Source: Pocillopora damicornis (lineage: Eukaryota). From it: a DNA stretch of 64,000 nt. The stretch covers positions 372,001 to 436,000 of the forward strand of contig NW_020844538.1 in NCBI RefSeq assembly GCF_003704095.1, written 5' to 3'. The notes under the pieces were generated by a model. That model was not told the DNA's origin and did no database searches. It was given only the letters and a program-made list of their open reading frames with translations. The position numbers were made by a program, and so were the translations under genes. Shown here piece after piece: positions 141-54,560 of this stretch (positions are counted from its first letter, which is position 1; each line of letters begins with the position of its first letter).

Positions 141-1655
141 CCATAGGGCAGCCATTAAATGGAGGCAAATACTCAGTAAACGGAGTGGTGGATGTTCTAC
201 CAAATGGTGACGTGGAACTTCGCCTGAATGCAAGAAAAGAAAGCAGTGGACCTGGTGCCCAACCACTTAGCCCCACACCTATGTTACCTACAAGTGGCTA
301 CACTACTGGATCTTCCACTGGGGGAGCTCCCAATACTGGTACAGCACCAATCTCCGGATCGACCTCCGGATTCAGTACAACGCCAGGGTTCAGCACATCG
401 CCCAGAATAAGGAATGCAGGTACGACGGCACTGCAATGGCACAAAAAAATTCCTGATAAAATGACGATAACAATAATTATTATTGATAACAATAATATGA
501 TAAAACTGAAAATAGGTTCCTGCCGGAAAAATTATATTCTAATCTTCGCGTCCTCGTATTCTTACAATAACAACCGAATCGAACATGACAAGTTCTACAC
601 TGCACCTAAATGATGACTTGTATAATTAAATGTTCCATATCGCAGTGGAACATTTCACGGATGGTCGTCGTCTCCATTTTGATAAATGGCGTATGATATT
701 CTTTAAGTTTTCTGAAAGTAGCACATCTCGATCAACAGCGATCCTCCACATAGTTAGGAAGAGGAACGGCCCTAAAATACGGTCTTACTTTACGAAATTC
801 AAGTTTTCATCTGCAGGCGACAACCCAAGACAAGTTGGACTTAATTTGCACAACGACTACCGCAGAGTACACAATGCTCCAATAATGAGCCTTAATTCCC
901 AACTTAACGATGACGCTCAGAGATATGCAGAAAAACTTGCCCGTGAGAGTGTTTTTGAACATGACAAAAACAATAGAAACCAAGGAGAAAACCTGGGGTT
1001 ACAATGCGCCAGTGGAAGTGATGCAGATCTGGTTAAGAAGGTTGTTGATGCATGGTAAGCTTCATCTGAGGCAATGCAAGTTTAATAAAAAATATAATTT
1101 GAACTTGGCTTTTATTGATTTGGAATAAAGCTCAGAACAATTCCCAGATGAGCCAGTTTTTCACTGAGCGGCATCCCTTGAAGTTATTACTGACCAAGAA
1201 AAACATGCATTGAATCGTCTGCCCATCAGTAATGGGGTGTTTTTTCACAAATATGCGTGCCATTGCAGTGCTACAAGAATAACTTCTGATCCGCTGTCTC
1301 ATTTTTTAGGTATAAAGAGGTTTGTGGTTACAATTTCGACAATCCTGGAGTAAGTTCTGGGGTTACTGGTCATTTTACTCAAGTTGTGTGGAAAACAAGC
1401 ACCAGACTTGGCATTGGGTTCGCCAGGGGAAGTTACACATTTGGCTCACAAAGATTTGACAACTGCCTGTTTGTGGTCGGCCGATATCTAGAACCAGGAA
1501 ACTTAGTTGGTGCCTATTCACAGAATGTGTCGAAGGGAAGCTTTAACGTGCAGATTTGTCGTTCTTCAAATAATTACGGGAAGAGAAGTAAGCCTTTTCG
1601 AAAACCAAATTCGGGAAAAAGTAAAAGAAAGAGCACCTTAGAGTTGGTCCTTTAA
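141..1655 (+). CDS. CAP-superfamily (SCP/TAPS, GAPR-1-like) gene 1, 5'-partial; exons 141-419, 817-1054, 1310-1655
   Basis: GT-AG introns in phases 1 and 2 (Trp codon split TG|G). CAP motifs [43 protein letters not shown]. Exon 141-419 encodes the hairpin motif plus a Thr/Ser/Gly/Pro stalk. The signal exon is presumably upstream of the window. Confidence 0.9.
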
Positions 1656-1850
1656 TCCTTTAACTCCCAAGATTTGATTGTTAATTCTCCCCTCTTGCTG
1701 CTACACAATTCCTTGTAAATTAGTTGCGAGAATGTGGTGAAAGATCAAGATTACAACTTCTACCTGATAAGTTTGAGTATTCTCATTAACTGTTTGCTAA
1801 AATAGTGTGGAAATTATTTAGAGAAGTTACATGTTAGTCACGTTAAAGGG
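1656..1850. mobile_element. TTAA-flanked MITE (piggyBac-like non-autonomous element)
   Basis: TTAA at 1652-1655 and 1851-1854; termini tcctttaactccca...gttaaaggg; similar to the elements at 48494-48697 and 58392-58580. Confidence 0.75.
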
Positions 1851-3102: not shown

Positions 3103-5441
3103 ATGTAAGTAACTTTGAAAAAAAACTAGCCAGCTAAATTTTAATTATGAGATGATTAAGTGAAGCAATTCCATGAATAACGCCATCAATTGTTAGTTAA
3201 GTATATAGATCTCTATGCATCTACTTTAATTTATGAAGTCACTTGATTTTTTAATTACAAATGCTCGATTATCGAAATCCTTAGAAAAGAAAAATTTAGG
3301 TCTTTTCCTTGCCTCTTCCATAGACTATTAACCTATTTTTGTTCTGTTAATGTCATTTATCAGGAATCCAAAGAATTTACATTGTTTGAATTATCATGGC
3401 CTGGTCGTTTGGTTAGGTTTGTTTTCAGTGGGAGGTAAGACATTTTGTTCATTAGAAATAATCGTTTATCGTACAACTATGATATCTTTCAAACACGGTT
3501 GTTATCTGCGTTTTCTTATTCTTATATTTGTTCAACAGCAAATGCAGGCTCGTTACGAATTCCTATTGAGGGACAGCTTATATACGACAGTTCATCAAAA
3601 ACGGCAGATCTCTGTCTGTCGCCGCTCATGTGTCCACCGTGTGTTTTTGACGCTCTTTGTAATCAGGGCGGAATTAATTCTATGCAAGGAACAAATAATC
3701 TACCTTACTCAACCAACGCTTTACCGCTAACCACTGTGTCAACGACCCCAACATCGTCGAGTACAGAGGCAGCCTCGACAGAGTCGCCCTCAACCACCGA
3801 AGCTACCACGCAGAGTGTTCCAACAACGGAGGAGCCGGCCAGTAGTACAACAGCATCAACCCCCTCGAGCAGCAGTATCACTGATCATACCCCTTCCTCG
3901 GCGTCTGAGACAACTCTCCTCACAGAGGCAACAGAAGCAACCGACGGTGGTAATCTAAGTCCTACAACATCGGTCACGGTGTCAGCAGCAACGGTAGGCG
4001 GAGGAATCGACGCGGAGGCAGGTAATGATGGGGATTTCATCGGAAAAAAAATCTGACATAGTGAACAACTTGGACCTTGTGGTCTCTCCGATAACACAAA
4101 TGATCCACCTCACCATTTTTTTGTGAGGCTGGAGTTGAGGTACATGATAAATGTGAATTGTAGCTATATGTCCTCCTATGTATAATGGTAGGGTTGTTTA
4201 GTTTTTGGCGAGGTTCAATGTCCAATTCATTCGTCATCAACAGGCATACCAAAATACCAGCGTTTAATCGCTTTGCAATGTCCTACCTGAAAACGCCTGC
4301 CTTTGAGAGACTTGTTCAAATCGTTGAGAAATAGAACGAGTGGATACTATAGTTCCTACTTGCATAGCCTGATTTGTTCTTTTTTGATATTCTCAATTAA
4401 GTAAAAAATGTCCATCACTTAAATCAGTTCCTTTTTGCTTTGTTTTTTTACTCGTAGACGTTCTCCAAAAGGGATTGGATAAGCACAACTTTTATCGCAG
4501 AATACACAAATCACCTGCTCTAATTTTGAGCTCACAGTTGAACAGCGATGCCCAGAAGACCGCTGAAAGAAGTGCAGCTCAGGGTAAACTTGTCCACACT
4601 GACGACTCAGAGTTGGGTGATCAAGGAGAGAATCTTGGCAAGTTGTGTGCCTCAGATGAAACTCCCGAGGAGATTATAACTAAAGTTGTTGAGAGATGGT
4701 GAGTAGATTATGACCAGATCTTCTCCGATCGACCTGGTAAAATCCTATGAAGATTTCCATAAACATGATGCTGCACGAATCCTAAAAATTAGAGACTTAC
4801 TCGTGATGAACAGATAGGTCTACCTCAGTCAAAAAAAGGCATAATCTAATCAGGAGCTTCTGAGCTCGTGCGTCACTTTCTTCGTGGAATGTGGAATGTT
4901 ATACAGGGAAACTTTGGTTTTATTCCACTATGCTAAGTGATTGTCCTAAAAAGGAAAAAATATATAGATATATATTATCTAGTTGGATAATTTCCCTTTT
5001 TTCGACTTTTCCTTTTAAAAATGCATCCATATTTTGAGGAAAAACTCATTTCTGGTTAGTTCTGGAACAACAAGGTCTAAGAAAAAATTTTTTTTTCTTC
5101 CTTTTTCTTCGTACTGAAGGTATAACGAGATTTGTAAGTACGATTTTAGCAAGCCAGAATCGTCATCCTCAACTGGACATTTTACACAGATCGTTTGGGC
5201 CTCGACTTCACAACTCGGCCTCGGATGGGCCTCAAAAGATGAAGACGGCTTCCTTTGTTATTATGTGGCAGGAAGATACAGCCCTAGTGGAAATATTGCC
5301 AACAAATTTGAAGAAAACGTCATGAAAGGAAGTTTCGACCCGTCATACTGTTCGTCAAAAAGGCGAAATCTTAAGAGTGTGCGAGATGTGATCTGGCCAA
5401 AATGGTATAACATAATTGTGAGAAGTCTCCACCAATACTAA
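3103..5441 (+). CDS. Secreted CAP gene 2 with Cys-rich hinge and Thr/Ser/Glu mucin-like stalk; exons 3103-3104, 3364-3434, 3539-4021, 4458-4698, 5120-5441
   Basis: Putative signal peptide MNPKNLHCLNYHGLVVWLGLFSVG with the start codon split AT|G. CAP motifs HNFYRRIH, LVH, GENLG, WYNEIC, GHFTQIVWA, CYYVAGRY, PSGN. Stop TAA at 5439-5441. The first micro-exon is less certain than the rest. Confidence 0.88.
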
Positions 5442-7721: not shown

Positions 7722-10345
7722 ATGAGCTGGCCTTTCATTTTCCTGATAATTCATGCAACATATGCCGCGAATGGTAAGTTAGAATTACATTTATAGTGTA
7801 AAGATCGTTTTATTCACTGTAATATTTAATTAACAAGTACAGAGGAAGGATTAGATCTTTTTAAAGTTTTGTCAAGGCTAAACTCAATTAATTTTCCTTA
7901 TTAACTTTGAATCAATTTCGAACAAAAATTATATTTATCGTTGTAAAAATTTCAGGGTTATTGTTATTATTATTAGTGGTGTTAGTATATATGCCACAAT
8001 GTGTTAGTGAAAGGGGTGAATATTTACCTTGCTGCTTCGCGGTTGGGTAAATATCTACGACTATTCTCCACTTCGGTGAATAATTGTCCACCATTGTCAG
8101 CAATATCATCATTATCTGTTGTTCAATTATCAACATTATAATCTTATCAAAATCATTATTACTATGTTTACTATTACCATTTTTATTATTACCATTAATA
8201 TCATTAAAAATCATGGGAAGGATAAAGAAGGTAAACCTATTGTGCTGTTAGGCCCTTTCAAAATTTTAATGAAAACTTTATTTTCCTCTCCCACACCAAG
8301 ACTCAAACGGTTTTAAGTTATAAGAGAAATAAAACATTCGAAGTAATATTAAAAATAAATTCAAAGTGTATTTCTGCTTTGGGACCCAAAATTTGTATAT
8401 TCAGATAAAACTGACATACTCTTATCCTGACTAGATTTCTGATACTGTTCCTAACTCTCGTTGTTTTGTTTTCATATTATGTTTCACGTTGTTGTTATTT
8501 GCTGGAAACAAAGTTAATAAATGCATCTATAGGAGGCATCCACAAAATTCAACTATGTAATGAACATACTTTTAAATTCGCAGAATTTACAATCCAAGGA
8601 AACGGTTCATATGAAGCTGGGAAATTAAAAGTAGACCTTCACCTTGAGTCGAATTTGAGCTTAACAGCGAAGACAACTGTTCCCCCAACTTCAGTGGTGA
8701 AAACTCTTGCTCCTACTATAAACGCGACAACAATTCCTCCATCTGAAACGATTCCCCCCTCTACGCTACCTTCAACACCGGTTCCTACCGTAAATTCTAC
8801 GACAATTGGGTCCGTGACAGGGAACCCACCGACACCTACACCAACAACAACAAGCGCAACAGTGAATGTCACTACCCCAACACATGTACCAGAGTATCTT
8901 GATGGAAAACTTTCAACAAACTCCGAGCCATGTAAGTAAAATATTCAACCCACATCAGTCGAGAACATTCAAATGTAGCAATATATTTCAGTTCGTAGCG
9001 TCCATTAACCTTTTCATATATCATCAATGGATAAACCCTTTTCGAAATGGCAGTGGGTCGGGCAGTGACAGCTTTAGTGATAGTGGCAAGGTTAGCTGTG
9101 TGAGATGACCCCAGAAATATTACGACATCGGCATCGGAAAAAGTTGAGAGGGGTTAGCGGCGATAGGTTGGAAAAAGTTGAGAGGGGGTAGCGGCGATGG
9201 GAATAGAGTGTTGGAGAGAGTGGAATGGATAGTGGAGGTAGCAATAGTATTGGTGACAGAGGTGAGAAGCTCATTTGGTGACAGTGGAAGTGGCAGTGGT
9301 AGCAGAGGGCAATATAGAGGCCACGGTGGTGGTGTGAGACAGGTGCAATCGAAATAAGGGTTTTGAAAACGAAATAAGCTTAGAACGACTCCCTAACCAT
9401 GAGCTTGGATTTAGTTTCAGCTTTAGATCGTACAGCCCTAGAGCTTCACAATTACTATCGTTCTATCCACGAGGCGCCTCTCCTGACCCTCGATACAAAC
9501 CTCCGAAAAGATGCTCAAGAATATGCTCTCAAAGTTGCTAGAAGTCAAATGTTACGCCCAGAACAAAATTTTGTACTCAATTCTAAAAACGAAGGTGAAA
9601 ACCTGGGATTTAGATGCTCGACAACACGACCTGATCCTGGAAAATCTTTGAGACAGATAATGAAGCGATGGTAAGAAATCCTCGGGCTACTGACCCTAAC
9701 GTCTTTTAAATCTTGTCTTCTCGTACTTTTTCCCGTCTATGACCCTAGTTTCCCCTCATTTTTCATATTTACCGACTCAGGTGTGTAAACTGTCTCCAGT
9801 AGAATTATTTATTGCGCTCCTCTTCATTGTCAATGCTTGGATACGTTATAAATTTGGTGATGTGACCGTCAAACCCAACAAATTACAATTTGAAAAAACT
9901 TCCCTTAAAAAAATATATTAACAAAAGAATTCTGAATGTTTTAGAACATTTGCGGCATAGCACAATGTTGAGTGTCTCGTTAAAAAAGTAAAACTCGATG
10001 AGGAACGAGATAAATATAAAATTATTCATTTAATTTAATTTATTGCTCCTCAGGTATGACGAAGGTTGCCAATACAACTTTCAAGCACCATCGACAGATA
10101 GGTATTCCTTCAGACATTTTACACAAATGACGTGGAATGGAAGCAGAAGGCTGGGCGTTGGCATCACCTATGGGAAAATCAACAATCTGCATTGCCTGTA
10201 TTTTGTCGCACGTTACAGACCCCGCGGAAACTTGGGAAACAAGCTCATATATATCAATAACGTGAAGAAAGGAGTTTTTGATTCGTCTTTTTGCAGACCA
10301 ATAGCAAATCAATCGCCTAACCAAGAAGTTATTTTGAAAGACTAA
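7722..10345 (+). CDS. Secreted CAP gene 3 with Thr/Pro-rich stalk; exons 7722-7773, 8584-8931, 9421-9670, 10054-10345
   Basis: Signal-like exon MSWPFIFLIIHATYAAN followed by gtaagt. Motifs HNYYRSIH, GENLG, WYDEGC, HFTQMTWN, CLYFVARY, PRGN. Intron phases 1,1,2. Confidence 0.88.
7995..8086. repeat. Short palindromic interspersed repeat in intron
   Basis: Inverted arms ggtgaatatttacc ... ggtaaatatctac, ending in ggtgaataattg. Confidence 0.45.
9048..9345. repeat. Purine-rich low-complexity intronic tract with a ~32-bp direct repeat
   Basis: G/A-rich (gtggcagtg-like) degenerate repeats; ggaaaaagttgagagggg(t/g)tagcggcgat occurs twice at about 9136-9199. Confidence 0.6.
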
Positions 10346-12765
10346 TCTGAAATTAATTTTACGTGTACAAAACAAACGAGAAGAAAACTTTAATTTTTCT
10401 TTAACATATGCTAAATATGTATTTATGGGAAGTGTGTTATGACTTGGAACAGAGTTATTAAGGACATCTCGGTTTCAATATAGTTACGTAGTTCAGACAA
10501 ACTGTGTTTAAGACATTAAAAGCTGTTCAATAAACAATGTAGCTGTATTTTGAAACTGATATCTAAACGCGTGGTAAACTTATGAGCAGCCAATTCCTCA
10601 CCTCAAGTGGCTGAAACGCACGCAATTCGGCTTTTAAGAGGGATGTTTGTCGTCTTCATACGAGCGTGGGACAGAAAAAAACATTCGTTTCCTCTTGGAG
10701 ATTCAGAAAATTTCACTTTTGTCACACGCTCGAGACGAGACGAAAAATGTCCTTTTCTCTATTTCGTGGTCGAATATAATAATATTTCTTCCTTTCTTTC
10801 TTCTATTACAATTCTACTTTGTTGTCGGACACTTTTTCTCTTGATGGGTCGATAGAAAATCCTTTATCTTCCATTTTAGGGGAAAATGGTACATATCAGG
10901 CCCTTAGCATTTGCTCAACAGGTTATGGTCACCTGTAGAGAAGTGCTACGGTTGCTCTTTGGAACACCTTAGCTTCAGCACGACATTCCTGAAATTTAGG
11001 TTGAGTACAATGTTCTGTGGTTTCCGATAAAGATCTGCCGTAATCCTATCCGCTGGAATGCATCAAATTGCTTTTTAGTTCCTACTGTTAGGTAGGAACT
11101 AAAGTAATCTAGGATTGCATTGGCTCAGAACGCTTTTCGGTTATTCTAGACAACGCCCGCCAATCTCCCAAACAATCAGGTGGAAAATTAAAACCAATAA
11201 CTTGGTCAAATGCATAGAAGGGGCGAGTTTCTGAAGAAAGCGTGCTAATCGTTGCGTCGCTGGAGGTTTTACAAGATCGGTTTTATGAACTGAGTCGCTA
11301 ATATAAATTAAAGGGTTTTTAAAGCTCATGTTTCGAATTTCAGCGCAAATTACGGAGGGCTAACGAGCAAATGGCGAAGGGAAGGATTAACCATCGTTCT
11401 GACGGATGGCCAACGCGCAAAACAGCAGCTTAAGTTATGGATTAAGGATACAAAAGCGAAATCGTGATGTTGGCAGGAGTCCAACCCGCAGCATCCGCCC
11501 AGTATTTCAGATACTTTATCACTATGCCTGACAATAACCGATGTAGGTAAACCATTAAAATTAATTCTCTTGAAACGCATCTTTCGTAATGCTATGATTT
11601 GAATACACGTATAGCTGTGTCACTGACCGGCTGAAAAATATTTCACACGAATTGTTGCGATTATCTACTTTATAAGCTATTGTTTAAGGTATGTGCATGT
11701 GTTTCGATACCCTCGATACCACTACAGTTCTCTTTTTTTCAGAATCTTTTTATTACAGTTGTAAGTCTAGATTTATTTTTGAAGTGATTAATCTATCCAA
11801 TTTTTTGTTACCTCTTCGAAAACTTCTCTGTATTTAAAGACTAAAATAAAGAACTTTACTTCCTATAAAGAACTTTACTTCCTATAAAGAACGTTATTTC
11901 TAAGGTTACTCGGTGAGGTAGCAGCATAAAAAACACGACTAGTGGCACGTTAACAGCTCGATTGGAAAAACGACCAGTTAATTGTCCAGGCGTCGGGAGA
12001 ATAAACTCACACCCTGATTTCAACAATAGTCATGAATCCAAAAACACAAGCTGTAGGTGCTAGATGTTATGAAACTTATTTTCTCGTCTTACATACTTCT
12101 CAAGAAGACCTATGCTTTGTTGAAATGAATATCTCATGGACCAAAAACTGACCACAAACAGAAAAACAGCAACCTGTAACCAAAATTTTTTAGAATGACA
12201 AAAGCTTTGGTTATTGTTTACTCAGACAATATTGCTGGTCCTGATATCCTATATTTGCCTAAACCTGTTTTAAGTGAATAAGTCCATAACATTATTACTC
12301 GTTTTATGTGGCTGGAATTTTTGTTGGTTCCAGGTAAGTTATGGCTTCTTAATCTCGTAGATAATATTTACTGTTTTACTGATACTAGGATTTTAGGAGG
12401 GATGTTTGGATTTTATTTTAGTGTTGCTTATGTTTTGGCTGTGACTATTAGCAACTAATGGGATCACAAATAAAATAAGGGATCGATTGAATACATTTTA
12501 GGATTTAACATGAACGCGTATTTTTTATTACTTTCTTTTAATTTCTTCTCAGATCATGATACATATTTGATACTCTTTATTCCCGTGACATTTTGTCTGT
12601 TAACCAATAGCCTTTGGTTCTTACTTGTACTGGATTCACGATTCTTCTGATATTGATATTTTAAGGATTCAGGGATAATGATAACGCTGCCCTGGCCAAA
12701 GTTCATAGTCGAATTAATGTTCTAACCACGGCTCCCTCTTTAATTGATCATTTTTACGCTTCAGA

Positions 12766-15700
12766 ATGAAAGCTGTGCAACTGTCTGTCATATACCTTTC
12801 CATTTTCATAAGCGTTTACTGGAACTATGGTGAGTGGTTACTTTGAAACAAACTGTCATTGTGGTCCAAGACTACAAAGCCGTAACATAAACTCAGCCTC
12901 AGGATGAACGTTATTTGCATGGTGCCTATTACACTTTAATTTTCCCTTATAAGAACTAGAAGTTTAAAACGAGAAATATCCAGGGCCGGGTTGCTCAACA
13001 CACAATTAACCTAACCAGGGGTTAATGTAAATTTTTAACTTAGTTTATAATTGTGCAAAGGGAATTTATTATTTTTAATTTTGTCCCGTTAGTTTCGAGT
13101 GATATTGAGATACGAACTAACAAAACGTTAACTATCATATGCGCTCTAAGCCAAGGTTGCCTCTAAATCCTATAATAACGTTAGCCCCCTTTTCGAACCC
13201 GGCCCAGTTGTTCAGTTACTCACTACGTATTGGAAGATCTCATGCTATAAAAACTGGAAAAAATGAAGAAAATGAAAACCTAGTGTAAATACTGTGTAAA
13301 TTTGTAAAATTCACATGGGGTAGAAGGAAAACAATTATGTTCAGAGGAAGATTGGCTCTCGGGAAAAACCGAGAACCAAATCCAGTTGACAGCATAGTGG
13401 AGAAGTTTGAATGGAAAAAGGTTCATATACGTAATCGTAAGTTCTTAATATGTTCTTCTCTTGATAAAGTCCAAACAACAAAGCGAGGCTCAGTGAAGGG
13501 TACTAAAAAGGACCAGTTCACCATAACAGGAAATGGAACAACTAAAGGAGGTAAAATGAAGATATTCGTTCACGTGCAGACTACTGGCAAAAATCCAAAT
13601 AAAGCAGTGCCAGGTAAAAAACAAGGGAAGGAAGCTCCCAATGTAAAACTTGGTCAGTCTGGTGAAACTCCGAGTCCATCACCTACAACGACACCACCGA
13701 TGTCTACTCAGGTCACATCCGCATCACCAAAACCCAAGAAAGGGAAACACTTTCAAGTCACACCGAAACCACCAATCAGTGGCAAAATCCAAAGCCTGAA
13801 ACCCAGCCAAAGTAAGAAACTCGCACCAAGTCAGAGTATGAAAAAACATAGTGAAATAAAATCGGTATCAAGTTCAGTAAATAATGCAGCGAGCTCCACT
13901 GTGGACTCTGCTAAAGTCACACCAACACCCTCTCCGAATCTTAAGTCCTCTTTAACGACCAGTACTGGTGTCCTTCCCTCTCCTAACTCTGCAATGTCCA
14001 CGCCTTCGCCTCAGTCCAGCGGAGCGGTGCCGGTGCAGAGCAAGCAAGCAGCTACAAGTGGCTTACCCGGATCCTCATCGCAACCTACAAACAAGCAAAC
14101 TAAAACTAGTCGGTCATCGGCATCTTCACCGCTACCTGATAAATCTTCGAGTCACGTCTCAGTGCAGCCAAGTGCTACAAAAAGTGTAGCTATTCAATCT
14201 TCATCTATGTCCACTTTAGCTCCTTCTTTATCTGTACCATCAGCTGTAATCTCTTCAACTCCTCTTTCCATTACCCCAAGTGCGTCAAAAACAGTAGTTA
14301 ATCCAGCTTCATCTCCCGCTAGTCTTGGTCCTTCCTCGACACTGCCACCTCCAGTTAAATCTCCTGGTGCAGGCACATCAAGCGCTGCAGTTACCCAGAC
14401 ATCCTCTCTCCTTGGGTCCAGTCCTTTCTCCTCTCCTGGATCAACCATTTCACCATCAAAGTCTTCCCTAACAAACACAGTAGCTACGAAAAACCCAACA
14501 ACTTCTCCTGATTTTACATGTAAGTGATTTATTTCCTCGCAATTTTTTTTAACCTTTAAAATCTGTCAGTTTATATATCTGCGCGCATGCACTCCTCAGC
14601 ATACGAACAGCAACCGTTCAATGCCAGTTAAATTACAAAGAAACCTTGGTGAATCTGAATCCTGTCACTAGAAATCTTAGATATCGTGAAAAGGTGTACC
14701 AGAAATAATTGTGTGGTTTGATATACTGACCACCAATACTGAGATCGAGCGACTTGAACAAAACCTTTTGATGATCTCGCAAGCTGACTTTAACATCGCT
14801 ATGTTTCTTTGTAACGCCACGAGGGATACCATAGCACGTTCCCCAAAGAGAGCTACACTAACATCAAGGAATGCATGTGGAACATCTTTTCCCTTAATTT
14901 GTCAATAGGTGTTCAAACCATTCGAGAAGTGACATCATCATACACTTGAGTCATGACTAACTACATAATACAAATATTTAGCCAAGCCTAAGACTGTAGC
15001 TCAAGTTGGTAATAGCCCTCTACTTTGTTGAAACTCTCAGCAAGCTCTAGAAGAGTTTATTGACAACAATTGAGGGACCAGTAATTTTATTAGTTGGGAA
15101 GGGGATGGGGAGAAAATTATTAGCGAGGGGTTTGTTTTTGATGTTATAATTGTTTTACGTTCGTTCAATACCTGAAGTCTTGAACTGATCCTTTCTCACA
15201 GTTTCCCGAGACGAGCATATAGCCCTGGATGAACACAACTTCTTCCGAAACTTACATAAATCGGTTCCACTCAGTCTTAACAAAGATATGGTATTGGAGG
15301 CACGCAAGTTCGCCAAAAAGATATCTGTAACTGGAAATCTCACACATGAATCGCCTGATAAACTGAAGCAAATAGGTCAAGGAGAAAATCTTGGATTGGT
15401 ATGTTCTAAGGTTGAACTCTCAGCTGCGCGGGTTGTAAGGAAAGTCATAGACACATGGTAAGGTTTACACAAATAAAGATACCCTACAGGGATTCTGTTA
15501 TTGTACTTTATCGAAAATCGCTGAATTTACATATGCACCGTGATGGTGCAAGATAGTAAGGTATCAAAAAAGCACTTTGATAATCCCTAGACGCACTGCT
15601 CACTCACACGGCGTACAAAAAAGATTTTCAAGGATGAATTGGCAACCTCCGTTTGACGTTCGTTGAAGACATATCCAGGGGTGAAAAGCGGTTTTCAAGA

Positions 15701-21175: not shown

Positions 21176-21204
21176 ACATTAAAGGCAAAGACAGTTTAAT
21201 ATAC

Positions 21205-30435: not shown

Positions 30436-31861
30436 ATGTGGCTTTGTTATCTCTTGCTTGCCATTGTAGCAGTCGATGGAGGTAAAGAAGATTCCTTTTT
30501 GATTAATGAAGTTTAAATTTGGCTATTTTCTTTTATGTAACTAATCGATTTTTAACTATACCGCATGTCAATTACAACGCGGTCGAAAGGGGCGTCTCAG
30601 AGGACAATAATATGTTGACGATAATATGTCAGTCCGCTGCAAGGGGGGTAGTTTTATTTATCGGAAACAAAATAAAGCAGGAAATCTATAGGAGAGGTTA
30701 CTAAAACAAAATCTAAATAAGGCTACAGTTTTAGAAAACCAATAGATCCGGAAATATTTTGAGGCCGTTGCTCGAGATAAAAATATATTTTCCAGTCTTA
30801 TCAATAAGCCTTCCTGATTTTCTTGTCGCAGATGTATTCCAGAATTCTCAAAATTTTAAGCTTTCTGGTACTGGAACGGCGGAGAAAAATGGCAAAATCA
30901 ATTTAAACCTTCAAATTCAGATCGCAGGAACTGGGGAGAGTCCGATAGGAGGTCTAACGGGGGCGAGTCCGACAACAAGTCCAACGGGGGCGAGTCCGAC
31001 AACAAGTCCAACGGGAGCCTCGGGAGTTCCGGGAGCAGCTCCAATTACTGGGGCACCAACAGCAGGAACAGGGGGAAGTATGCTACATCAATGCTTAGTT
31101 CTGACCTTCAAGTCTTCTTTCATTTCATTTCTTAATAATAGAACTACTTGGAGCAGGGGGAAGTATGTTACATCAATGCTTAGTTTCGACGTTGAAATCG
31201 TCTTTCATTTCATTGCCGTATAGCAGAAATGCCAGGCGTAGGGGGAGGCATGCTACATCAATGCTTAGTTTCGACCTTAAAATCTTCTTTCATTTCATTT
31301 CTGTATAGCAGAAATATCGGGAGTAGGGAAGGTATGCTACATCAGTGCTAAGTTCTGACATTAAAACCCTCTTTCATTTCTCTTCTGTAGAATAGAACTC
31401 CCGGGAGCAGGGGGAAGTATGCTACATGAATGCTCACTTGGACCTTAAAACCTTCTTTCATTTTCTTTCTGTAGTAAATGAAAACTGAACATACTTCATT
31501 TACTTAACATGATCTAACAAGGCGAAATTTTGTATGAGATAACATCTCACAACATAGCACGACAAACATACTATACGATATTTTATCCTAGATGTGACTT
31601 GTCAAATCAGTTTCAGGCTACATCGCAATCTCAGCCTCAGACTGCACAACTGGGAGAGCTGAGTCCTTCTCTTGAATAGCAGAATTAGAAATTGTTTCTA
31701 TCAGTTGTCCTCATGTTAACATTTGTTGCTCAGGGGCAAGTTTACGCGAGCTTGAGAATAAAACCATACGACCTAGTTTAAAATGTTCTACTTATAAAAA
31801 GGGCGACAAATGCTTTTGCATGGCCCTGCACTGGGTATAGCATCGATTCTTTCTTAACAAA

Positions 31862-36939: not shown

Positions 36940-37095
36940 TTTTTGATCCAGTGTTTGGCGGCTTTCCGAATTGCCTTGATTTAGAGAAAGGCCGGAAACT
37001 GCTAAATGCTGCTTAGAATTATTAGGGAGATTAAAGTGTCTAGCGACTGGTTTGGATGCGTCCTTGTCATTTCTCTCCAAGACGCGAAGGTGTTC
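36940..37095 (-). mobile_element. Penelope-like GIY-YIG endonuclease C-terminal remnant (further copies at 37660-37765 + and 42850-43015 -)
   Basis: EHLRVLERNDKDASKPVARHFNLPNNSKQHLAVSGLSL..., matching the EH...HF pattern of PLE GIY-YIG domains; the other copies carry stops and deletions. Confidence 0.65.
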
Positions 37096-41082: not shown

Positions 41083-41128
41083 ATGTGGTTTTGTTATATC
41101 TTGCTTGCCATTGCAGCAGTCGATGGAG
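41083..41128 (+). CDS. Signal-peptide exon of a gene-7 paralog (rest lost in gaps or on misoriented contigs)
   Basis: MWFCYILLAIAAVDG followed by gtaaag; near-identical to 30436-30481 including upstream sequence. Confidence 0.8.
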
Positions 41129-43488: not shown

Positions 43489-45387
43489 ATGTTTCCAGCT
43501 GGTCTGTATCTGGCCACAGTATATGTACATTTCATTCCTCGCATTGTACCCTCTGCCCGTCCGATTCCGAGAACTGTACTGCCTTTCCAAACTACCTGTG
43601 TAAAGTGGCCTGTTCCACCAGAGAAGGAGGGGCTGGCAAAATCGTATCCCGGATCACAGACCTCGTTGTACCTGGAAAACATCGAGACTACATAAAGAGA
43701 ACACAAAAATAAAGGAAAAGAAAAATCAGCGGTCACAGCAATGTCTTAGGCATAAATTTGACTGCTTTGGCGTCACTCATCACGAAACACACGGCGGAGA
43801 GTATCGTCCATGATTAGCGACCTTATGTGTTCCGATTTTGTCGAGACTGTCCTCACAGTTTTAATTCAAGCAGTTCTACCCCTGTGTCATGTTTTCAAAT
43901 ACCTAAAATAGTTTTGCAGACATGGGTTTCACGTATGTTTCACCACCCTGATTTGCCACTTTGCTCGCTATATTCACTAAAATTTATTATCTCTTTCATC
44001 TATTCCTTTTTACGCCGTTTGTTAACTCGTATCACATTTTCGTGAGCGCTTTTTTCATGGGACCTGTAACGATTGAAAATTTGAATAGATTCCAAGCACT
44101 ATTCGGGTACTAAATTTGTGCTAAGGCAGCTCATCTGGTGAGTTTGGTATCACCATTGGTGTTTTGGCTCGGCTTTTGGCTCGATTATTCTCTATAAAAT
44201 TCCTAAGATATTTGTTGTGGGAATTTGATGTTGGATCACTTAATAATCCCCTACAGTGATATTTTTCTTCACTCACATGAGTTTTCTGCTTTATATTTAT
44301 TTATATTGATACTGTTGGGGGAAATTCTGTCCTGGTCTCTCGTGAAAAGAAAGCGTGACAGAAGAGTGTGACTATGTAAAAATATTATGAATTCTTTTGT
44401 ATCCTTAAGTCTGCTTCCGTAAAAATTGATAATAGGAGTTGGCGAAAGACTATAACAAGAATAGAAGCAGAGTAATTGGATAAAAGTAAGAAAAAATAGT
44501 AAGAAGGAAAGGGAACACAAAAAAGGTTTTGGTTTCGGGGATGCTTGTCTTAACCGATGAAGATGTCACAATGGATTCCTGTTAGCATATTACAAGGTGT
44601 CAGGTGATTAACTGTAACATGAAGTGACACCAATGAGGGTTACAGCAAGAAACTGGATTGAACGTTAGCATGGGTTATGTGCGGGCCGCTATTGCAGAGC
44701 GCCAAATATATTCGATATTTGTTTCAGATGTTTTGTCTGGAAGGGTGGTTACTCCTTAGTGTTTCGAATCATATCATTCAGAAATAGTCAGGGTTACTAC
44801 ACCCTACGTCTAAGAAAAGAATTGTAACCAGATTGGTGAAAGTAGGCCTGGTTTATTTTTACGTTGCAATAGTCAATTTCGTCCTCTACGCCTTACCCTC
44901 AAGTAGCGAACTGGTAAAATGTAATTCAAAATTAAAAGCATACCCAAAACACTGAAACAGAAAAAAACTAATTACCATAATTGTTACTTACTCTTTTTAT
45001 GGGGAATAGGGCCAAAAATAAAAGGAACACCCACGGGTAAACGATAGGAACTTAGCAAAGATTCAGGGAGAATTTAGTGAAAGCGAGGTTTGGGGGTAAA
45101 TTTCCTGGAAATGACATCATTGTGTAGGATAGCCTCGGGAGCTTATTCTCAAAGGCCAAGGTTGAATACTACACTTAATCGAATTTCTGCGCAGCAAGAA
45201 AGCGAGATTTAACCTCACCAATTTGTCACGGCGTCCTCTATGGTTGGTGAACCGTTTGATAAACATTCCATGGCAAGATTCTCTCCCTGTCCAACTCTGT
45301 CACTGCTCGGAGAATGTACTAGGCTACCCATATCTGCAAGCGTCTGAGCGTACTGTTTCGCCTCATCACACATTTGTCTGTCCAGTG
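43489..45387 (-). CDS. Gene-7 paralog fragment: partial CAP-a exon 45387-45219 and partial CAP-b exon 43671-43489
   Basis: LDRQMCDEAKQYAQTLADMGSLVHSPSSDRVGQGENLAMECLSNGSPTIEDAVTNW|[29 protein letters not shown]...[13 protein letters not shown]; both ends abut 100-N gaps. Confidence 0.85.
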
Positions 45388-45486
45388 NNNNNNNNNNNNN
45401 NNNNNNNNNNNNNNNNNNNNNNNNNNNNNNNNNNNNNNNNNNNNNNNNNNNNNNNNNNNNNNNNNNNNNNNNNNNNNNNNNNNNNN

Positions 45487-45727
45487 NTACCGACGAAGAA
45501 CAACAGGGTTTAGCAAAGCACAATGAATTCCGACAAGTACATGAAGCTGCTGCTATGACACTGGACAGACAAATGTGTGATGAGGCGAAACAGTACGCTC
45601 AGACGCTTGCAGTTATGGGTAGCCTGGTACATTCGCCGGGCAGAGACAGAGGTGGACAGGGAGAGAATCTTGCCGTGGGATGTTCAACAGACGCTCCACA
45701 AACCATAGAGCAAGCCGTGACAAATTG
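45487..45727 (+). CDS. Second gene-7 paralog fragment: CAP-a exon
   Basis: TDEEQQGLAKHNEFRQVHEAAAMTLDRQMC...LVHSPGRDRGGQGENLAVGCSTDAPQTIEQAVTNW followed by gtgagg; its sequence differs from both 32085-32328 and 45219-45387. Confidence 0.85.
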
Positions 45728-47390
45728 GTGAGGTTATATTTCGCTTTCTTCCTGCGCGGAAAATTCGATTATGTGTAATATTCAACTTTGGCCTTTGAGA
45801 ATAAGCTCCCGAGGCTATCCCACACAATGATGTCATTTGCTGACAATTTACCCCCAGACCTCGCTTTCACTAAATTCTCCCTGAATCTTTGCTAAGTTCC
45901 TATTGTTTACCCGTGGGTGTTCCTTTTATTTTTGGCCCTATTCCCCATAAACAGAGAAAGTAACGATGTTGGTTATTAATTATTTTTTTATTTCAGTGTT
46001 TGGGATTGTTTTTTCTTTTGAATTACATTTTACCTGTTCGCCTTAAGGGTGAGACGTAGAGGGTGGAATTTTATATTTCAACGTAAAAATACACCAGGCC
46101 TACTTCCACTAATCTTGTTACAATTATTTTCTTAGAAATAGGGTGAATGTCAGAATGAATGATCTGATTCGAAATACTTAAGAGCAACCACCCTTCCAAA
46201 CAAGACATCTGAAACAAATATCGGATATTTTTGGCGCTCTGCAATAGCGGCGCGCACACAACCCAAGCGGTCCATACCACTAACGTTCAATCCAGTTTCT
46301 TTCTGTAACCCTCATTAATGTCACTTCATGGTACGGTTAATAACCTGATACCTTGTTATATACTTATGGGAATCCATTATGACTTCTTCATTGGTTAAGA
46401 CAAGCATCGCCGGAACCAAAACTTTTTGCGTTCCTTTTCCTTTTTGCTCTTTGTTTCTTACTGTTATCCAATTACTCTGCTTCTATTCTTGTTATAGTCT
46501 TCCACCAACTCCCATACACAATTTTTGCTGAGGCAGACTGAAGGGTACAAAAGAATTCATAATATTTGAGCCTTGTCACACCTTTCTGGCACGCTTTCTT
46601 CTCATGAGAGACCAGGACAGAATTTCCCCTAACAGCATTAATACAATATCAAGCAGAAAAAGGCGTAAAAAGGAACAGATGAAAGAGAGAATATATATGG
46701 GTTTCACGAATATAAAATATTCGTGAAACCCATGTCTGCAAAACCATTATAGGTATTTGAATACTCGACGTAGGGGTACAATTGCTTGAACTAAAACTGC
46801 GGGGACAGTTTCGACAAAATCGGAACACCAAGAGTTGCTAATCATGGNNNNNNNNNNNNNNNNNNNNNNNNNNNNNNNNNNNNNNNNNNNNNNNNNNNNN
46901 NNNNNNNNNNNNNNNNNNNNNNNNNNNNNNNNNNNNNNNNNNNNNNNGCGATTAGAGGAATTATCACTGTTAAGTCATTGTTAAGGTTAAGGCCAAATCA
47001 AGTTGTCGGCGACGAAACCTGATGACAACGCGGAAACGTTCAGATTTATTTTCAAAGTGTTAAGAGGTCCTTTGCATTGTAATTGATTAAATATTTTAAA
47101 AAAGGGTTTTTGATTTTTCAATCAATGGCGAGGGGAGAGGCAAATTTACTTTGTAAGACTGACCATGAGACGTATTAAATACGACCTCTCCGCCAAAGAT
47201 CTCTTGCCCATAATGGATTATTTCTCGATATCCACATCGGTGCAATTGGCCTAGTCTAAACATCTGAAGACTCTCCTCGCCATGTTGAAATTAAAAAAAA
47301 ATAGGAGATTGCTCACTTGGGTACTTTTCGAAGTCTTTCCTTTTTTCTTATCTTAAATTTGCCTTTTGCATTTAGGACTTCCTTAAAAAA

Positions 47391-50300
47391 ATGTTGCTTT
47401 GGTGCCTTCTATTTTCCATCGTTGCTGCCCAAGGAGGTAAAAACGATTTCCTTTATTGAACTGTCTGAATTTAACGGCACAGTTCTTCTTCTTATTGACT
47501 CGTGAATTTTGCTTCATGCTGCGGGTAAACGACGAGGAGAATGAAATGGCTTTCGGTGGTATAACAGTTACTATAGCCTTATTAAACTAATGATTGTCAT
47601 TCTCATAAATGAAAATAAAAGAAAAACACTTAAAAAAAAATGGACAGCGAAAACAAATTTATTATACTCATAGCTTCTCTCCGCAGGAAAATATTTTATT
47701 TGGATCAAATTTCTCATCGTGCTCTTGCTCGTTGTGCATCTGTTCTCTTGTAAAGCATGTTGTTTCAACCGACCTGAGCGCGCGCCAAGTGGAAATCTTA
47801 ATGTAATCATATATGTTGTTTAATTGATTATTAAACTGCCTTCATGTATTAATTTTACATGTCATTTAAGTTTGCCCAAGAGACTGGATCGCCTTGCTTC
47901 CAGAACTTGACCCAGTTTTTGGTAGCATACAGTGACAAAGAGCATCGTAACTCCATAAAATGAGACCATCCCGTAAATTAATCAGGTTTTATTGTCGCAC
48001 GACTGATTTTAGTTCATGCTACTGTGTAGACAGAGGCACTATTAGAATCAGAGGGACTTCCTATCTAAGATCACCCCACAAATTCCATCGCCGAGGCTTA
48101 AACTCATATCTTTTTTTAAAAAACTACTTATCATCTATCGGTACCGTCCTTTTCCTTGGTTGTCACAGACATGGACCGCGATGCTTCCATTACAATCTAT
48201 GGCACTGGGATAATAAAACAGAACGGCACAGCCAATATGAATTTACAGATTAAGATAGGTGGACGTAAGGCAGGAGGTGTACCAGGAATTCCAATGGGAG
48301 GTGCAGCTCCATTGATAGGGAAAGAACAGCCCTTACAAGGAGGAGGTATGGTTTGTAAATTCAGTCTTCGCTATTTGGTTTAGTTTTGATGTAATTTTAA
48401 AGTTCGACGGTCATTTTGTATCTAAAATAGCATCGCAAAACCTGGATACAATCAGTTTTCCCTCCCATTAGTCCATGCAGTTTGTTTCATTAACCCTTTC
48501 ACTCCCAAGATCTAATTAGTTATTCTCCTTACTGTCTGCCATACAATTCTTACGATGTTAGTTTTGAGAATTTGGTATTGGATCAACTAATAATTCCATA
48601 ATTAGTATTTTTCTTCATTCTCATCACCTGCCTGCTTGATATTGTATCAATATTGTAAGGAGAAATTCTGTCTTGGTCACTTATGGGAGTGAAAGGGTTA
48701 AATCATCTTTCTAATTTTGAGATCAATGAAGTAAACCCGGTTATCACCTTATATACCATGGCTTGACCTCATATGGGTAATAATCACATTGTCCAAAGCT
48801 TCAGTTTCCTTTTTGTGGGGGGGAGGGGAGACAGAAATTAAGGTATAAGCGAAAACCAACGTAAGAATAAAAAAAAGGTGAAAGAAACATCCTCACATAG
48901 CCAGCCCCGTTAACAAGAAAAACTAAATGAATCTTGTATTCTGTTTGGCTACCCAAAGTGACTGGTGAAGTAATCTTGCTCACTCGGGAATTCCTGCTTT
49001 GATCCAACGCATTCCTATTAACCTAATAGCCCATAAAATTAAATAGGTTCCACAGTTTAGAAATCGTCATGTGCAGCTCCTTCGCAAATTTCACTACTAA
49101 ATGGTACAGGGTAACGTGTTATACAAACTACAAATGATTACAGTTCTCTTCTCCTGTCCTTGAAAAGACATAAGCCAGCATCAGAAAAAGCTTCATGAAC
49201 CTTTACTTATCATCATCATTAGTAGTCCTGTTGACGAGCCAAGTACAGTTAGTGATTTAATTTACTTGGAGAATTAATAGTCTGATCCCACTGTCTTGTT
49301 AAGAAAGTAGTAAAGAGAGTAAGTAATAATTCTGAATAGTCCAGCCTCAGGCCTGAATTCCAGAACCCCTCCCTTTCCCCCGCCCTCTTATTTACCTCCT
49401 ATGCAAGGACAGTACCACTTAAATACTTATTCTTGATNNNNNNNNNNNNNNNNNNNNNNNNNNNNNNNNNNNNNNNNNNNNNNNNNNNNNNNNNNNNNNN
49501 NNNNNNNNNNNNNNNNNNNNNNNNNNNNNNNNNNNNNNNNNNNNNNNNNNNNNNNNNNNNNNNNNNNNNNNNNNNNNNNNNNNNNNNNNNNNNNNNNNNN
49601 NNNNNNNNNNNNNNNNNNNNNNNNNNNNNNNNNNNNNNNNNNNNNNNNNNNNNNNNNNNNNNNNNNNNNNNNNNNNNNNNNNNNNNNNNNNNNNNNNNNN
49701 NNNNNNNNNNNNNNNNNNNNNNNNNNNNNNNNNNNNNNNNNNNNNNNNNNNNNNNNNNNNNNNNNNNNNNNNNNNNNNNNNNNNNNNNNNNNNNNNNNNN
49801 NNNNNNNNNNNNNNNNNNNNNNNNNNNNNNNNNNNNNNNNNNCTTATTATAACAACCTTGACTATATTTTTAAAAACTTTATCCTGAAATACTCCGCATC
49901 AGCATCTAAAAAAAGTGATATGCGACGGTACTAAACGAAGAGAGTTATTTAGAACAGATAACTTATTTTAGAACCAGTTTGGATTGAGGAATATGGAGTT
50001 AGGGGCTTCAAGTGTTAAGATTCTATCCCTTATTACGGGCATTTATTCCAAATAGGGCAATGCAGAGGATTTAGTCAAATGAACTCGTTTCGAACAGCTT
50101 CTCCATTGTGCCTTTTCTTTCAGTCCTTCGTCCTTTAAATCCGCACGCTGTCTTTTTCCTCATTAGCTTCTTTTGAGCTCTCCTATGAAATAATACAATC
50201 TCCACATGCGTTACCACCATGCAGGAACAATGTGTTTGATGGATTGTGACAATTTAACGTCGCCTCACTTGAAAAGAACATAGTTTTTGAGAACTCTGAG

Positions 50301-51056: not shown

Positions 51057-51810
51057 AATAGCAAGAACGAAGGTATTACCAAAAATAAATAATCAAATTA
51101 CCATGAATAAAAGAACTTCAATCAAATCCCGTTGTTTCCTTTAATTCTGAGCTGTGTCATATTGATGATTTAATGCCATTGAAATCGTAGCACAAGGCCA
51201 AAGATCCTTCCTATAAATCTAGAAACAAACGGAAATTCCAGAAATATGGCAATTTGTGGTCCAAAGAAGGAATCTTGAAATGTTGATTTCAATAAGAAAC
51301 AAACGATTGAGTTAGTTTTTTGCTGTTTGGCATTCAACTGTTTGACCTCTTTTTCCAATTATGGATAAGTACCTTAAAGTTTTGGTCTTTGTCTTTGTCT
51401 TCTTTTTTTTTGTTTTTAAATTTCTTTAAAAATTGGGCGAAAAGATTCCTACTCTTACATTTCATTATTTTCAAGTTTATTCATTCACTTATTCATTTCA
51501 CTTATTCACCCATTTCCATTATTTTTTTCTGTGATGATGGGAGGGGTGGGGGGCACCAGAGCCCTGATTCAGTCTACCCTTTTATCAAAATTTCGAATCA
51601 GCTGAGAATAAAATCTAAACAGTGAAGTATGTCGTTATTATTTTTGCTATTACGCGGATTAAAACACACGCGAAAGAAAACACGCGCAAATAAAAGCATT
51701 AACATAACAAAAGTTGTAATACAAGACAAGACATGGCCTTGTTCGCCCTATATATATATTTATTTTATCGTACACTACATAACAATTTTTGAGCCTAGCA
51801 AAATAACCAA

Positions 51811-54560
51811 TTAACCATGCTTGTGATGGGAAATGTGACCTTTCTTTTTGCTGTTTAGCAGCCCAAGGTCCTCGCCTCGCTGCTTTTTAAATCCAGTCTT
51901 TTTAGTCTTCCAGGCGTCCTTGACCGGAGGAGCTGAAATGGAAAGAAGAAAGTCAACAAAAGTAATTAGCTGCATTTAAGACCTACACTTTCCAGAGTTT
52001 ACGGAAACTTTGATTTTTCGCCTTAGAATTCGAAAGATTAAATAGATTCCGATTCTATGTCATCAAACCAAACCATGTTTTCTATTATCAGTAATTTTAT
52101 ACCATTAGTAACGGTAATTCCGTCATTGTATTAATTAAAGATAAGTGAATGCAAAAAGTCAGAATATAGAGCAAAACAGCTCACCAGTTTCTCCTGCTAG
52201 GTCTCCTGCCGGGAATGCCCCTCCTTGTTGGCCACCTGCAGTAAGACCAGTAGCAGGTATTCCTGCTCCAAATCCTCCTTCCGAACCTCCTACTCCTCCT
52301 TCTGGGGCTCCTAACCCTCCCACTGGGGCTCCTAAACCTCCCTCTGGGGCTCCTAACCCTCCTTCTGGGGCTCCTAATCCTCCCACTGGNNNNNNNNNNG
52401 GGGCTCCTAACCCTCCTTCTGGGGCTCCTAATCCTCCCACTGGGGCCCCTAACCCTCCTTCTGGGGCTCCCAACCCTCCCTCTGGGGCTCCTAACCCTCC
52501 TTCTGGGGCTCCTAACCCTCCTTCTGGTGCTCCTAACCCTCCTACTGGGGCTCCCAGCCCTCCCTCTGGGGCTCCTAACCCTCCCACTGGGGCTCCTAAC
52601 CCTCCCACAGGCGCTCCTAAACCTCCTCCTGCGCCTCCCAGTCCTCCTGTTGTGCTAACTGCGCCTCCCAGCCCTCCTGTTGTGCTAACTGCGCCTCCTG
52701 GGGCTCCTAATCCGCCTACTGTGCCACCTAGCCCTCCTGCTACCCTTGCTTGACCTCCTGATTTGCCTCCTATTCCTCCTACTGGACTGACTGCGCCTCC
52801 TCCAAGACCACCTGTCACGCTTCCTACGCGTGTGCTGCTTCCTTTTTTTCCGGATATGCCAGCTATCTTACCTGCTGTTCCAATTACCTTACTTGCTACC
52901 TTTCCTGCCTTTCCTCCCTTTAATGCTATGCTTCCAACTTTTGCTGCCAGGCCCAATAATCCAAGAGGTTGTGGTTGGCCACCCATTTCTTTTGATGGAC
53001 CATTAACACCTCCTCCTTCGGGTTCTACCCCTCCTCCCAGCCCCTCATCAGGTCCTTCAGCTGCCATTCCCTGCCCACCAATTTGTCCTACCGGTCCTTC
53101 TATGTCAACTTGTAGATTTAATCTGGTTGCGCCGTTTTTTTTTATTGTTCCAGTGCCAGAGATAGTTAATTGAGAATCTTGGCCCACCTCTGAAACAATC
53201 AATAAATAGTACCCCTTTGATGAATAGAAGGTGAAGGTGATCGCGGATTTTTGAACCACGACTTTGCCTTGGTTAGTAAAAAGCAAGTTGGTCAGTAATT
53301 ATCAGCCTTCTTGAACGAACAAGTTTATAATTTTGAGGTTTTCTACATGGCTAAAACCACCGACGAGATTTCACAAAAGGGTGGCAAGGTGAATTTAGGG
53401 AACTCGTCGTGTAATTTTCTTCTGCTGAATTAAAAAGGAAGATAATCACGCTCGGATGGCTGATCAAAACTTTAGGATTCGCTTCATATTGCTCGTTAAC
53501 GGAGGTGGCCTTTCAATGACAAATAACTGAAAAGAGAAACAAAGAAAAGGGGAAGACATTGTAAAAACCTCCTTAAATTTATGGGTATATCAAATGTTTC
53601 AGTTCGATTCCTTTGTTTTTCTAAGCTTCACTATCGAAACTCGCAATCATTTTGGAGGGTCATGAGCGCAGTTATCATATTTCATAAAGCTTCAGAAAGG
53701 CCAAGTGGCAGTCGAAATTTTATGACTTAAAAGGTACAACTGAAATAACACTGAAAATTTGTTAATGAACATAAGAGAAGAAACGATCTACGACATACCT
53801 CCCCCTTCAACAGGGACTACTGCCCTTCCCCTGAGAGTTCCTGCCCCCAGTGGTGGAACTTCTCTCATAGAAGTCATACGCCCTTTAGAAAGAACGCGAA
53901 ATAAGCTCTTGAGTTACAAGCCGTCAAGAGAATAATTCAATAACAGTTTTGAGTAGTTCTGGTGCAATAAGATAAAAATAATAGCAGTATCAGTGTGGGT
54001 GTAAAGCAAGTGCTAGAAACAAAAGTATTAGCTGTGACAAAAGCAGTGGCAGTTTCTGGAGCAGATGCGTAATGAAAGTAATGCGTAATGAAAGTCGAAC
54101 CTTTTTGTTTCAAGAAAAGGTTTCCATTTTATTCAAATTTACTTTAATTTCATATCACATCACCCTCGAGGCTTCACGAGTATTTTAAAATTTTTCCTTG
54201 GTATATATGAATGTAACTCGTAGACGTATGGTCAGTAATTATTCTGCGATAAAGGAGTAGATTCCCAACACCTTGAATTTCTGAGCAGGGTTTTGAGCGA
54301 TATTTTGATAGATCGATATAGATATTATTCCAAAAAGCCTATTTTAAACTGAACCTATTTGTATGAAGAGTCAATGGTCAATTTTTTTTTGCTCTTATTA
54401 CCTCTGAAACGTCCTCTGTTTCTTCGATGTCGGGCTGCAATGTAGAATAAAATTATTACTTGGGAAGACGAAAAGAAATGTAACGTTAAACTGGACGAGT
54501 TGCTTCTGTTTTACCTCCTTCTACTGCTACAACAGCCAACAGAAGAAAACGAAGCCACAT
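51811..54560 (-). CDS. Secreted Gly-rich repeat protein derived from the CAP cluster but lacking the CAP domain (gene 10); exons 54560-54515, 54434-54402, 53882-53799, 53189-52185, 51932-51811
   Basis: All-phase-1 GT-AG introns keep one open frame: MWLRFLLLAVVAVEG / ARHRRNRGRFR / GRMTSMREVPPLGAGTLRGRAVVPVEGG / EVGQDSQLTISGTGTIKKNGATRLNLQVDIEG...(GGLGAP[E/V])n...GET / APPVKDAWKTKKTGFKKQRGEDLGLLNSKKKGHISHHKHG*. The two small internal exons are less certain. Confidence 0.82.
52260..52700 (-). repeat. Coding 21-bp tandem repeat (GGLGAP[E/V]) plus two 30-bp units (GGLGGAVSTT-like)
   Basis: ggggctcctaaccctcc(ttc/cac)t period-21 array on the plus strand. A 10-N gap at 52390-52399 suggests the array is collapsed. 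Confidence 0.95.

Follow-up and report, generated by a model that had tools for sequence, protein, structure and literature searches.

The 64,000-nucleotide stretch of Pocillopora damicornis DNA analyzed here (positions 372001-436000 of contig NW_020844538.1; hereafter, the window) covers part of a tandem array of genes for secreted CAP-domain proteins in a stony coral, and a number of these genes encode, directly behind the signal peptide, a module of ~25 residues that is predicted to form an amphipathic β-hairpin. The genes have a common scaffold, in which a short signal-peptide exon is followed by one phase-1 exon and then by two CAP exons, and in which the phase-1 exon encodes the ~25-residue module first and a low-complexity, freely evolving stalk second. 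Across copies, the length of the stalk ranges from ~60 to ~340 residues. The window is eukaryotic in composition, with a GC content of 30-47%, and has many N gaps; the assembly that was searched comprises 234.35 Mb in 4,393 contigs, and the RNA runs containing this stretch are labelled coral or marine metagenome.

The CAP profile PF00188 matched CAP exon A of the genes g3 and g11 with 26.0 and 39.4 bits, respectively (cut-off, 21.1 bits), so that it is the host genes, and not the hairpin, that belong to the CAP family. With hidden Markov models (HMMs) built from window exons, CAP-A and/or CAP-B exons were found in every window gene but g10. At least 71 CAP matches were found in the genome, many of them in tandem clusters, and the array itself continues beyond the upstream edge of the window for at least 46 kb, where eight further plus-strand genes lie (contig positions 322001-372000; L014-L018).

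The hairpin module and its copies

The g3 gene, on the plus strand, provides the transcript evidence. Exon 1 (7722-7773) contains the start codon, encodes a 17-residue signal peptide, and ends in a phase-1 GTAAGT donor; exon 2 (8584-8931), which is 348 nucleotides long and symmetric (phase 1-1), encodes the hairpin and then a Thr/Pro-rich stalk. These are followed by CAP exon A (9415-9669), bounded by RNA joints and matching PF00188 with an E-value of 1.7e-5, and by CAP exon B, which runs to the stop codon (10053-10345), is covered by RNA contigs, and matches PF00188 with an E-value of 0.004 and the CAP-B HMM built here with 118 bits. The RNA contigs were assembled from three poly-A or oligo-dT runs (X2, X9, and X12) belonging to three studies; they cover g3 as 8583/4-8931, 9415-9669, and 10053 to 10470 or beyond, and contain the GT..AG joints 8931>9415 and 9669>10053. 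Because the unaligned 5′ letters of these contigs match positions 7743-7772 exactly, that is, the end of the signal-peptide exon, the g3 hairpin is part of the mature mRNA and starts with the first codon past that exon. Thus, for g3, the segment that the preliminary description of this DNA had placed at the head of a variable exon is present in spliced contigs of all three studies, and the hairpin begins a few residues at most past the signal-peptide cleavage site. Eight variant sites were observed within exon 2 in the RNA contigs; all eight fall in the stalk and the hairpin is free of them, but their number is too small for significance. At g4, the RNA contigs are of low depth and unspliced only. 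In addition, 41 bases at 11531-11573, in intergenic or intronic DNA, are replaced by 8 other letters in RNA-library contigs, which is probably an indel polymorphism between colonies.

The preliminary description had listed eight copies of the motif, and all eight peptide strings occur exactly at the places given for them in the window. No run of N touches any of the eight, and every motif lies 0-14 codons past a phase-1 polypyrimidine-AG acceptor. The g3 hairpin occupies 8583/4-8651. On the same strand, the g4 hairpin (13514-13582, in an exon 2 starting at 13470) precedes a Ser/Thr/Pro stalk of ~320 residues; the g6 hairpin (22839-22907) lies in an exon 2 starting at 22822; the g7 hairpin (30852-30923) lies in an exon 2 starting at 30832; and the g9 hairpin (48186-48257) lies in an exon 2 starting at 48169. 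On the minus strand, g10 exon 2 (52185-53189) encodes a hairpin at 53101-53172 and then a Gly-rich repeat stalk. For g3, g7, g9, and g10, a short exon that contains an ATG, encodes a hydrophobic core, and ends in a phase-1 GTAAG or GTAAA donor was found upstream, the predicted signal-peptide exons of the last three being 30436-30481 (with a GTAAAG donor) and 47391-47436 on the plus strand and 54515-54560 on the minus strand; plausible ones are present for g2 and g4. The two remaining copies, both on the plus strand, are more divergent. In g1, a probable hairpin at 167-238 occupies the same exon position and phase, in an exon 2 starting at 141 whose signal exon would lie outside the window; it lacks the second glycine and is in register with the upstream gene u3. 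In g2, the segment at 3556-3621 has the same position in the gene, is followed by a Cys-rich segment, and matches no profile. Four of the upstream CAP genes, u3, u4, u6, and u7, also bear divergent hairpins at the same place and in register with the window copies (open reading frames at contig positions 334944-335303, 339328-340062, 354577-354939, and 358938-359306, respectively, all on the plus strand). In u3, u6, and u7, an additional segment of ~5 residues, or possibly a third short strand, precedes the G-x-G.

The motif reads h-x-h-x-G-x-G-x-h-x, a turn of 3-5 Asn, Gly, or Asp residues, and h-x-h-x-h-x-h, where h is hydrophobic. Across 22 sequences, the hydrophobic fractions at successive positions are 0.86/0.05/1.00/0.23/Gly (1.00)/0.14/Gly (0.91)/0.09/0.95 in strand 1 and 1.00/0.09/1.00/0.00/0.95/0.14/0.86 in strand 2, and so the strict alternation and the Gly/Asn turn proposed at the outset are borne out. 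One face thus consists of Ile, Leu, and Val together with the two glycines, and the other of Thr, Ser, Asn, Gln, Glu, and His. AlphaFold2 (AF2), run on alignments built here, predicts two strands each in g7 (residues 6-15 and 21-30; predicted local distance difference test [pLDDT], 83-88) and g3 (residues 2-11 and 14-23; pLDDT, 74-83), in both cases followed by a disordered tail, in agreement with the β-hairpin originally suggested. In the AF2 register, the two near-invariant glycines lie on the hydrophobic face and are opposite large aliphatic residues of strand 2. The module is therefore modeled as a two-stranded amphipathic β-hairpin at the mature N-terminus.

Statistical membership is graded. 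In leave-one-out HMM searches of the six-frame translated window, g7, g9, and g10 were recovered with 18-19.5 bits (E-values of about 1e-4) and g3 marginally (9.9 bits; E-value, 0.1), but g4, g6, g1, and g2 were missed, so that the reciprocal recovery anticipated in the preliminary description holds for only part of the set. Profiles built from foreign sequences only recovered g6 (37 bits), g10 (33 bits), g7 (15.8 bits), and g9 (8.8 bits, rank 3) in the window, and missed g3, g4, g1, and g2. The divergent upstream copies were not picked up when an HMM search was iterated over 134 kb of the cluster. Smith-Waterman shuffle tests were made on 40-residue regions around the motif, with the four upstream paralogs added (66 pairs, 2,000 shuffles). 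Eleven pairs reached the floor of p ≤ 5e-4, joining u3, u6, u7, g3, g4, g7, g9, and g10 (g4 with both g3 and g7 among them) and, as a separate set, u4 with g6; the two sets are connected by weaker links. The best values for g1 and g2 were p = 0.008 and p = 0.026, respectively, neither of which holds after correction for 66 pairs. By these sequence comparisons, g3, g4, g6, g7, g9, and g10 appear to be members of one family and g1 a weak but probable one, while for g2 similarity is not demonstrable; of the eight instances first claimed, six are thus statistically supported.

The preliminary description had also argued that the hairpin is probably under independent selection since it is kept in g10, a gene that lost its CAP domain. 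This argument carries little weight. As in its relatives, the stalk exon of g10 terminates in a phase-1 GTGAGC donor (52184/5), located just before the stop codon that closes the open reading frame, so that a further exon is expected and the end of the frame probably does not mark the true C-terminus. In other assemblies, CAP exons are present downstream in group-A relatives of g10 and g7. The order of g8-g10 also looks disturbed. On opposite strands, two CAP-A exons face each other head to head (45218-45728) across a gap at 45388-45487, and the plus-strand copy precedes the signal and hairpin exons of g9, a gene without a CAP-A exon of its own (gap at 49438-49842); this arrangement suggests that contigs are mis-ordered or mis-oriented between 45.4 and 52.4 kb. 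The only gap within a motif-bearing exon, 10 N at 52390-52399, falls in the Gly-rich stalk of g10, about 700 nucleotides past the motif.

Several neighboring features were also observed. For g11, a signal-peptide exon is plausible at 59069-59123, and CAP exons A (59828-60106) and B (60332-60649) are present, all on the plus strand; no hairpin/stalk exon was seen, and so the gene represents a short form of the scaffold. The g5 gene contains a 480-residue open exon (18248-19687, plus strand) with neither a hairpin nor a Pfam match; a similar open reading frame of 520 residues precedes a g6-like gene in an external contig (L011:717-2279), and the order of g5 and then g6 is thus conserved. The stalk exons of g6 (22822-23100, plus strand) and of its relatives P0013, P0017, P0019, P0021, and P0022 share a second conserved element at the 3′ end, aromatic/Lys ... 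F-G-x-E-T-G, directly before the likely donor, and the end of the g10 exon resembles this element (G-E-T-G).

Relatives and protein-level selection

A profile search of 1.84 billion representatives (E < 1e-3) yielded 18 matches: four are copies of the window's g3, g6, g7, and g9 exons, six are motif exons of relatives, and eight are unrelated or uninspected. A second profile search added four relatives. All external relatives come from public assemblies of coral-associated samples, and they sort into group A (g7/g9/g10-like) and group B (g6-like); CAP-A and CAP-B exons lie behind the motif exon in four external contigs. When a g3/g4/u-type alignment was used as the query, the only matches were near-identical copies of u6 and a single close ortholog, and cross-species support therefore applies to groups A and B and not to g3 and g4. 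A search with residues 1-45 of the g10 exon for annotated full-length proteins of 188-598 residues gave no match. Across the whole genome, the matches of two profiles were limited to the six copies in the window. The module has a narrow, lineage-restricted distribution.

Past the motif, stalk residues are unalignable and the alignment collapses at the motif end, as expected from the earlier proposal that one motif is shared by otherwise unalignable exons. Over the 23-24 motif codons of the relatives L012 and L013, the proportion of synonymous differences (pS) is 0.71 and that of nonsynonymous differences (pN) is 0.05, synonymous sites being near saturation; the corresponding values are 0.51 and 0.15 for L011/L008, and 0.45 and 0.18 for g6/L008. 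Hairpin identity is comparable to that of the CAP exons in the same genes, and between external relatives and in g3/g4 it at least equals that of CAP exon A: 78% versus 64% for CAP exon A in L007/L013, and 43% versus 29% for exon A and 46% for exon B in g3/g4. In window-to-relative pairs, the hairpin is somewhat below CAP exon A (52% versus 69% in g7/L007; 59% versus 73% in g6/L011). These comparisons show purifying selection on the hairpin at the protein level, at about the rate of the CAP domain, with the adjoining stalk not so constrained. Overall, it is highly probable that the module is real and conserved.

Proposed self-association and competing explanations

Since a lone hairpin could not bury such a hydrophobic face, the hairpin would most likely self-associate. 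The first 35 residues of the g7 region were modeled in four copies as a complex, in three runs and with controls. The score was 0.42 in the three runs and 0.02 in the best control; at least 83% of the contacts were common to the runs, and the partner pLDDT was at least 63. In the model, strand 2 (residues 19-29) is antiparallel to strand 2 of another copy, and residues 9, 11, 13, 23, 25, and 27 are face to face with a third copy. The model, which bears on self-contact and not on stoichiometry, supports self-association. The oligomerization proposed in the preliminary description thus finds backing from the homo-oligomer model, which surpasses its controls, and this backing is that of a model only. 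As a possible mechanism, strand 2 would pair with its counterpart in another copy, edge to edge, the hydrophobic faces, including the glycine positions, would pack together as a small β-sandwich, and several stalked CAP heads would be gathered in one multivalent secreted complex.

Several considerations weigh against this reading. The score mark of the complex model, reached by 21 of 30 solved homo-pairs and by none of 23 solved single chains, was calibrated on two copies of folded microbial proteins, and four short, partly disordered eukaryotic chains of 35 residues fall outside that calibration. A single model, made without using the supplied alignment, stands behind self-association, and any amphipathic hairpin might pass. 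The pLDDT of the monomers is moderate, with a predicted template modeling score of about 0.3. RNA support is confined to g3; leave-one-out and cross-group HMMs, which miss the copies named above, leave some subgroups unlinked; and the unity of the family depends on position, phase, pattern, and pairwise shuffle tests made post hoc. Taking all of this together, we assign a probability of roughly 0.45 to the statement that the module works by self-association into a multivalent complex, including the mechanism outlined above.

The hydrophobic face may instead be directed at a different partner. The hairpin would then dock onto its own or a neighboring CAP domain, resulting in head-to-tail chaining or autoinhibition, or onto a mucus, collagen, or chitin fiber by β-strand addition. 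A hetero-interface of this kind would be served equally well by the conserved amphipathic face, the exposed edge strands, and the flexible tether, and the similar evolutionary rates of the hairpin and CAP domain in the same gene pairs would be in line with contact between them. However, the stalks differ widely in length (about 60 to about 340 residues), the homo-oligomer model passes its controls, and in g10 the hairpin is still consensus-like in spite of the absence of a nearby CAP exon, which is itself uncertain. On balance, docking is an unlikely explanation.

The constant place of the hairpin, invariably 0-14 residues into the exon behind the signal-peptide exon, also fits a determinant of sorting or secretion without any extracellular role, which would act in regulated granule entry (in gland cells, mucocytes, or cnidocytes) by aggregation or through a receptor, or in tuning signal-peptide cleavage. 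N-terminal hairpin loops are known sorting signals in prohormones. Yet those loops are held by disulfides, whereas the present hairpin has no cysteine; no conserved dibasic cleavage site follows the hairpin in the alignments; and 25 residues of strict two-strand alternation exceed what the tuning of signal-peptide cleavage would need. We regard a sorting role as improbable. A furin-type propeptide was considered in its own right and rejected, because the residues past the hairpin are not conserved and dibasic pairs occur in few copies only.

Strands of ten residues with strict alternation, a Thr/Ser-rich face, and glycines within a strand are also what might be expected of a hairpin that inserts into a membrane or lipid, as a small β-barrel or a layer on a lipid surface, and that anchors CAP proteins to the surface of a cell or microbe. 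CAP proteins bind lipids and sterols, and the α-hemolysin stem is among the rows returned by Foldseek, at a non-significant E-value of 2.7. Nevertheless, the hairpin lies between a signal peptide and a disordered stalk, with no folded pore-forming domain at its flanks; the modeled complex is a sandwich and not a barrel; and no significant similarity to any toxin was found in Pfam, in PDB sequences, or with Foldseek. Membrane insertion is thus very improbable.

Finally, that the hairpin has no function of its own, being residual homology among young tandem duplicates or a product of DNA- or RNA-level constraint (for example, by a splicing enhancer at the exon's 5′ end), is hardly credible: the paralogs are in tandem with identical exon scaffolds and several subgroups are linked weakly, but recent duplication and nucleic-acid constraint explain poorly a motif with few replacements at near-saturated synonymous sites (the pN and pS values reject a DNA-level constraint), with CAP-like conservation next to a stalk in the same exon that cannot be aligned, and with retention in relatives from other assemblies.

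If the module is indeed a self-associating tag, the CAP proteins of this array would act as multivalent complexes, and assays of their binding and function would have to be changed accordingly. In cnidarian secretions, CAP proteins are plentiful and their role is largely unknown. A natural, Cys-free oligomerization hairpin of ~25 residues could also serve in protein engineering, and the cluster provides a clean example of one symmetric phase-1 exon combining a constrained module with a freely evolving stalk. The significance is limited by the shortness and lineage restriction of the module and by the computational nature of its support. A more far-reaching possibility, which we consider improbable, is that the hairpins of the paralogs are mutually compatible and give mixed oligomers or short cross-β filaments, that is, a combinatorial secreted scaffold. 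Such mixed assembly would display CAP heads on stalks differing in length and chemistry (Thr/Pro mucin-like or Gly-rich elastomer-like) and would amount to a previously unknown extracellular assembly system in corals.

Comparison with known domains and systems

Judged from these comparisons, the hairpin is an undescribed, lineage-restricted N-terminal module under protein-level selection, with models as the support for its fold and self-association. In a Pfam scan of the eight hairpin exons (E ≤ 10), seven matched no family, and the sole row, SOG2 (E-value, 1.1), fell in the stalk of g2. A profile of 12 hairpins compared with the sequences of all PDB chains gave an unrelated ubiquitin-like domain as its best match (E-value, 0.36), and no fibritin. 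Foldseek comparison of the AF2 model with PDB returned nothing at E ≤ 0.001, and the best score in the ESM Atlas, 0.84, is within the stated noise range of the tool. The failure to match the motif to a named domain, with which this work began, is therefore reproduced by all four of these searches. An EF-hand loop, suggested by a match to recoverin over 8 residues (E-value, 3.8), was rejected, because the columns corresponding to loop positions 1, 3, 5, and 12 are occupied by Ile, Gly, Thr, and Ser, and not by the acidic ligands Asp or Glu. In the literature searched, the motif is not described; one paper lists a GAPR-1-like protein in tissue fractions of Stylophora.

With respect to the host genes, the likeness is to the GAPR-1-like branch of the CAP/SCP/PR-1 family (PF00188), as they encode a CAP domain split over two exons. 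GAPR-1 itself, however, has no signal peptide, whereas the window proteins would be secreted and stalked. To our knowledge, no CAP family has such an N-terminal hairpin. The closest analogy in pattern is provided by the stems of β-pore-forming toxins of the α-hemolysin and aerolysin type, which share with the module an alternating amphipathic hairpin of about 2 × 10 residues enriched in Gly and Ser/Thr; those stems, however, belong to a folded domain that forms pores, of the leukocidin, aerolysin, or MACPF type, while the window hairpin is flanked by a signal peptide and a low-complexity stalk. Mucin-like stalked secreted proteins are comparable in overall layout, with a terminal assembly element, a Ser/Thr/Pro- or Gly-rich stalk, and a globular head, but their assembly domains are large and Cys-rich (VWD and CTCK), in contrast to an element of ~25 residues without cysteine.

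The foldon of phage T4 fibritin is a C-terminal β-hairpin trimerization domain of ~27 residues. It differs from the present module in that it has no sequence match to it, in that the window hairpin is N-terminal, following a signal peptide and preceding a disordered stalk and not a coiled coil, and in packing, which is a propeller in the foldon and would be a sandwich of sheets according to the four-copy model. Even so, the foldon appears to be the best functional analogy, as in both cases a single short hairpin ends an elongated, non-globular chain, where it would serve as an oligomerization tag.

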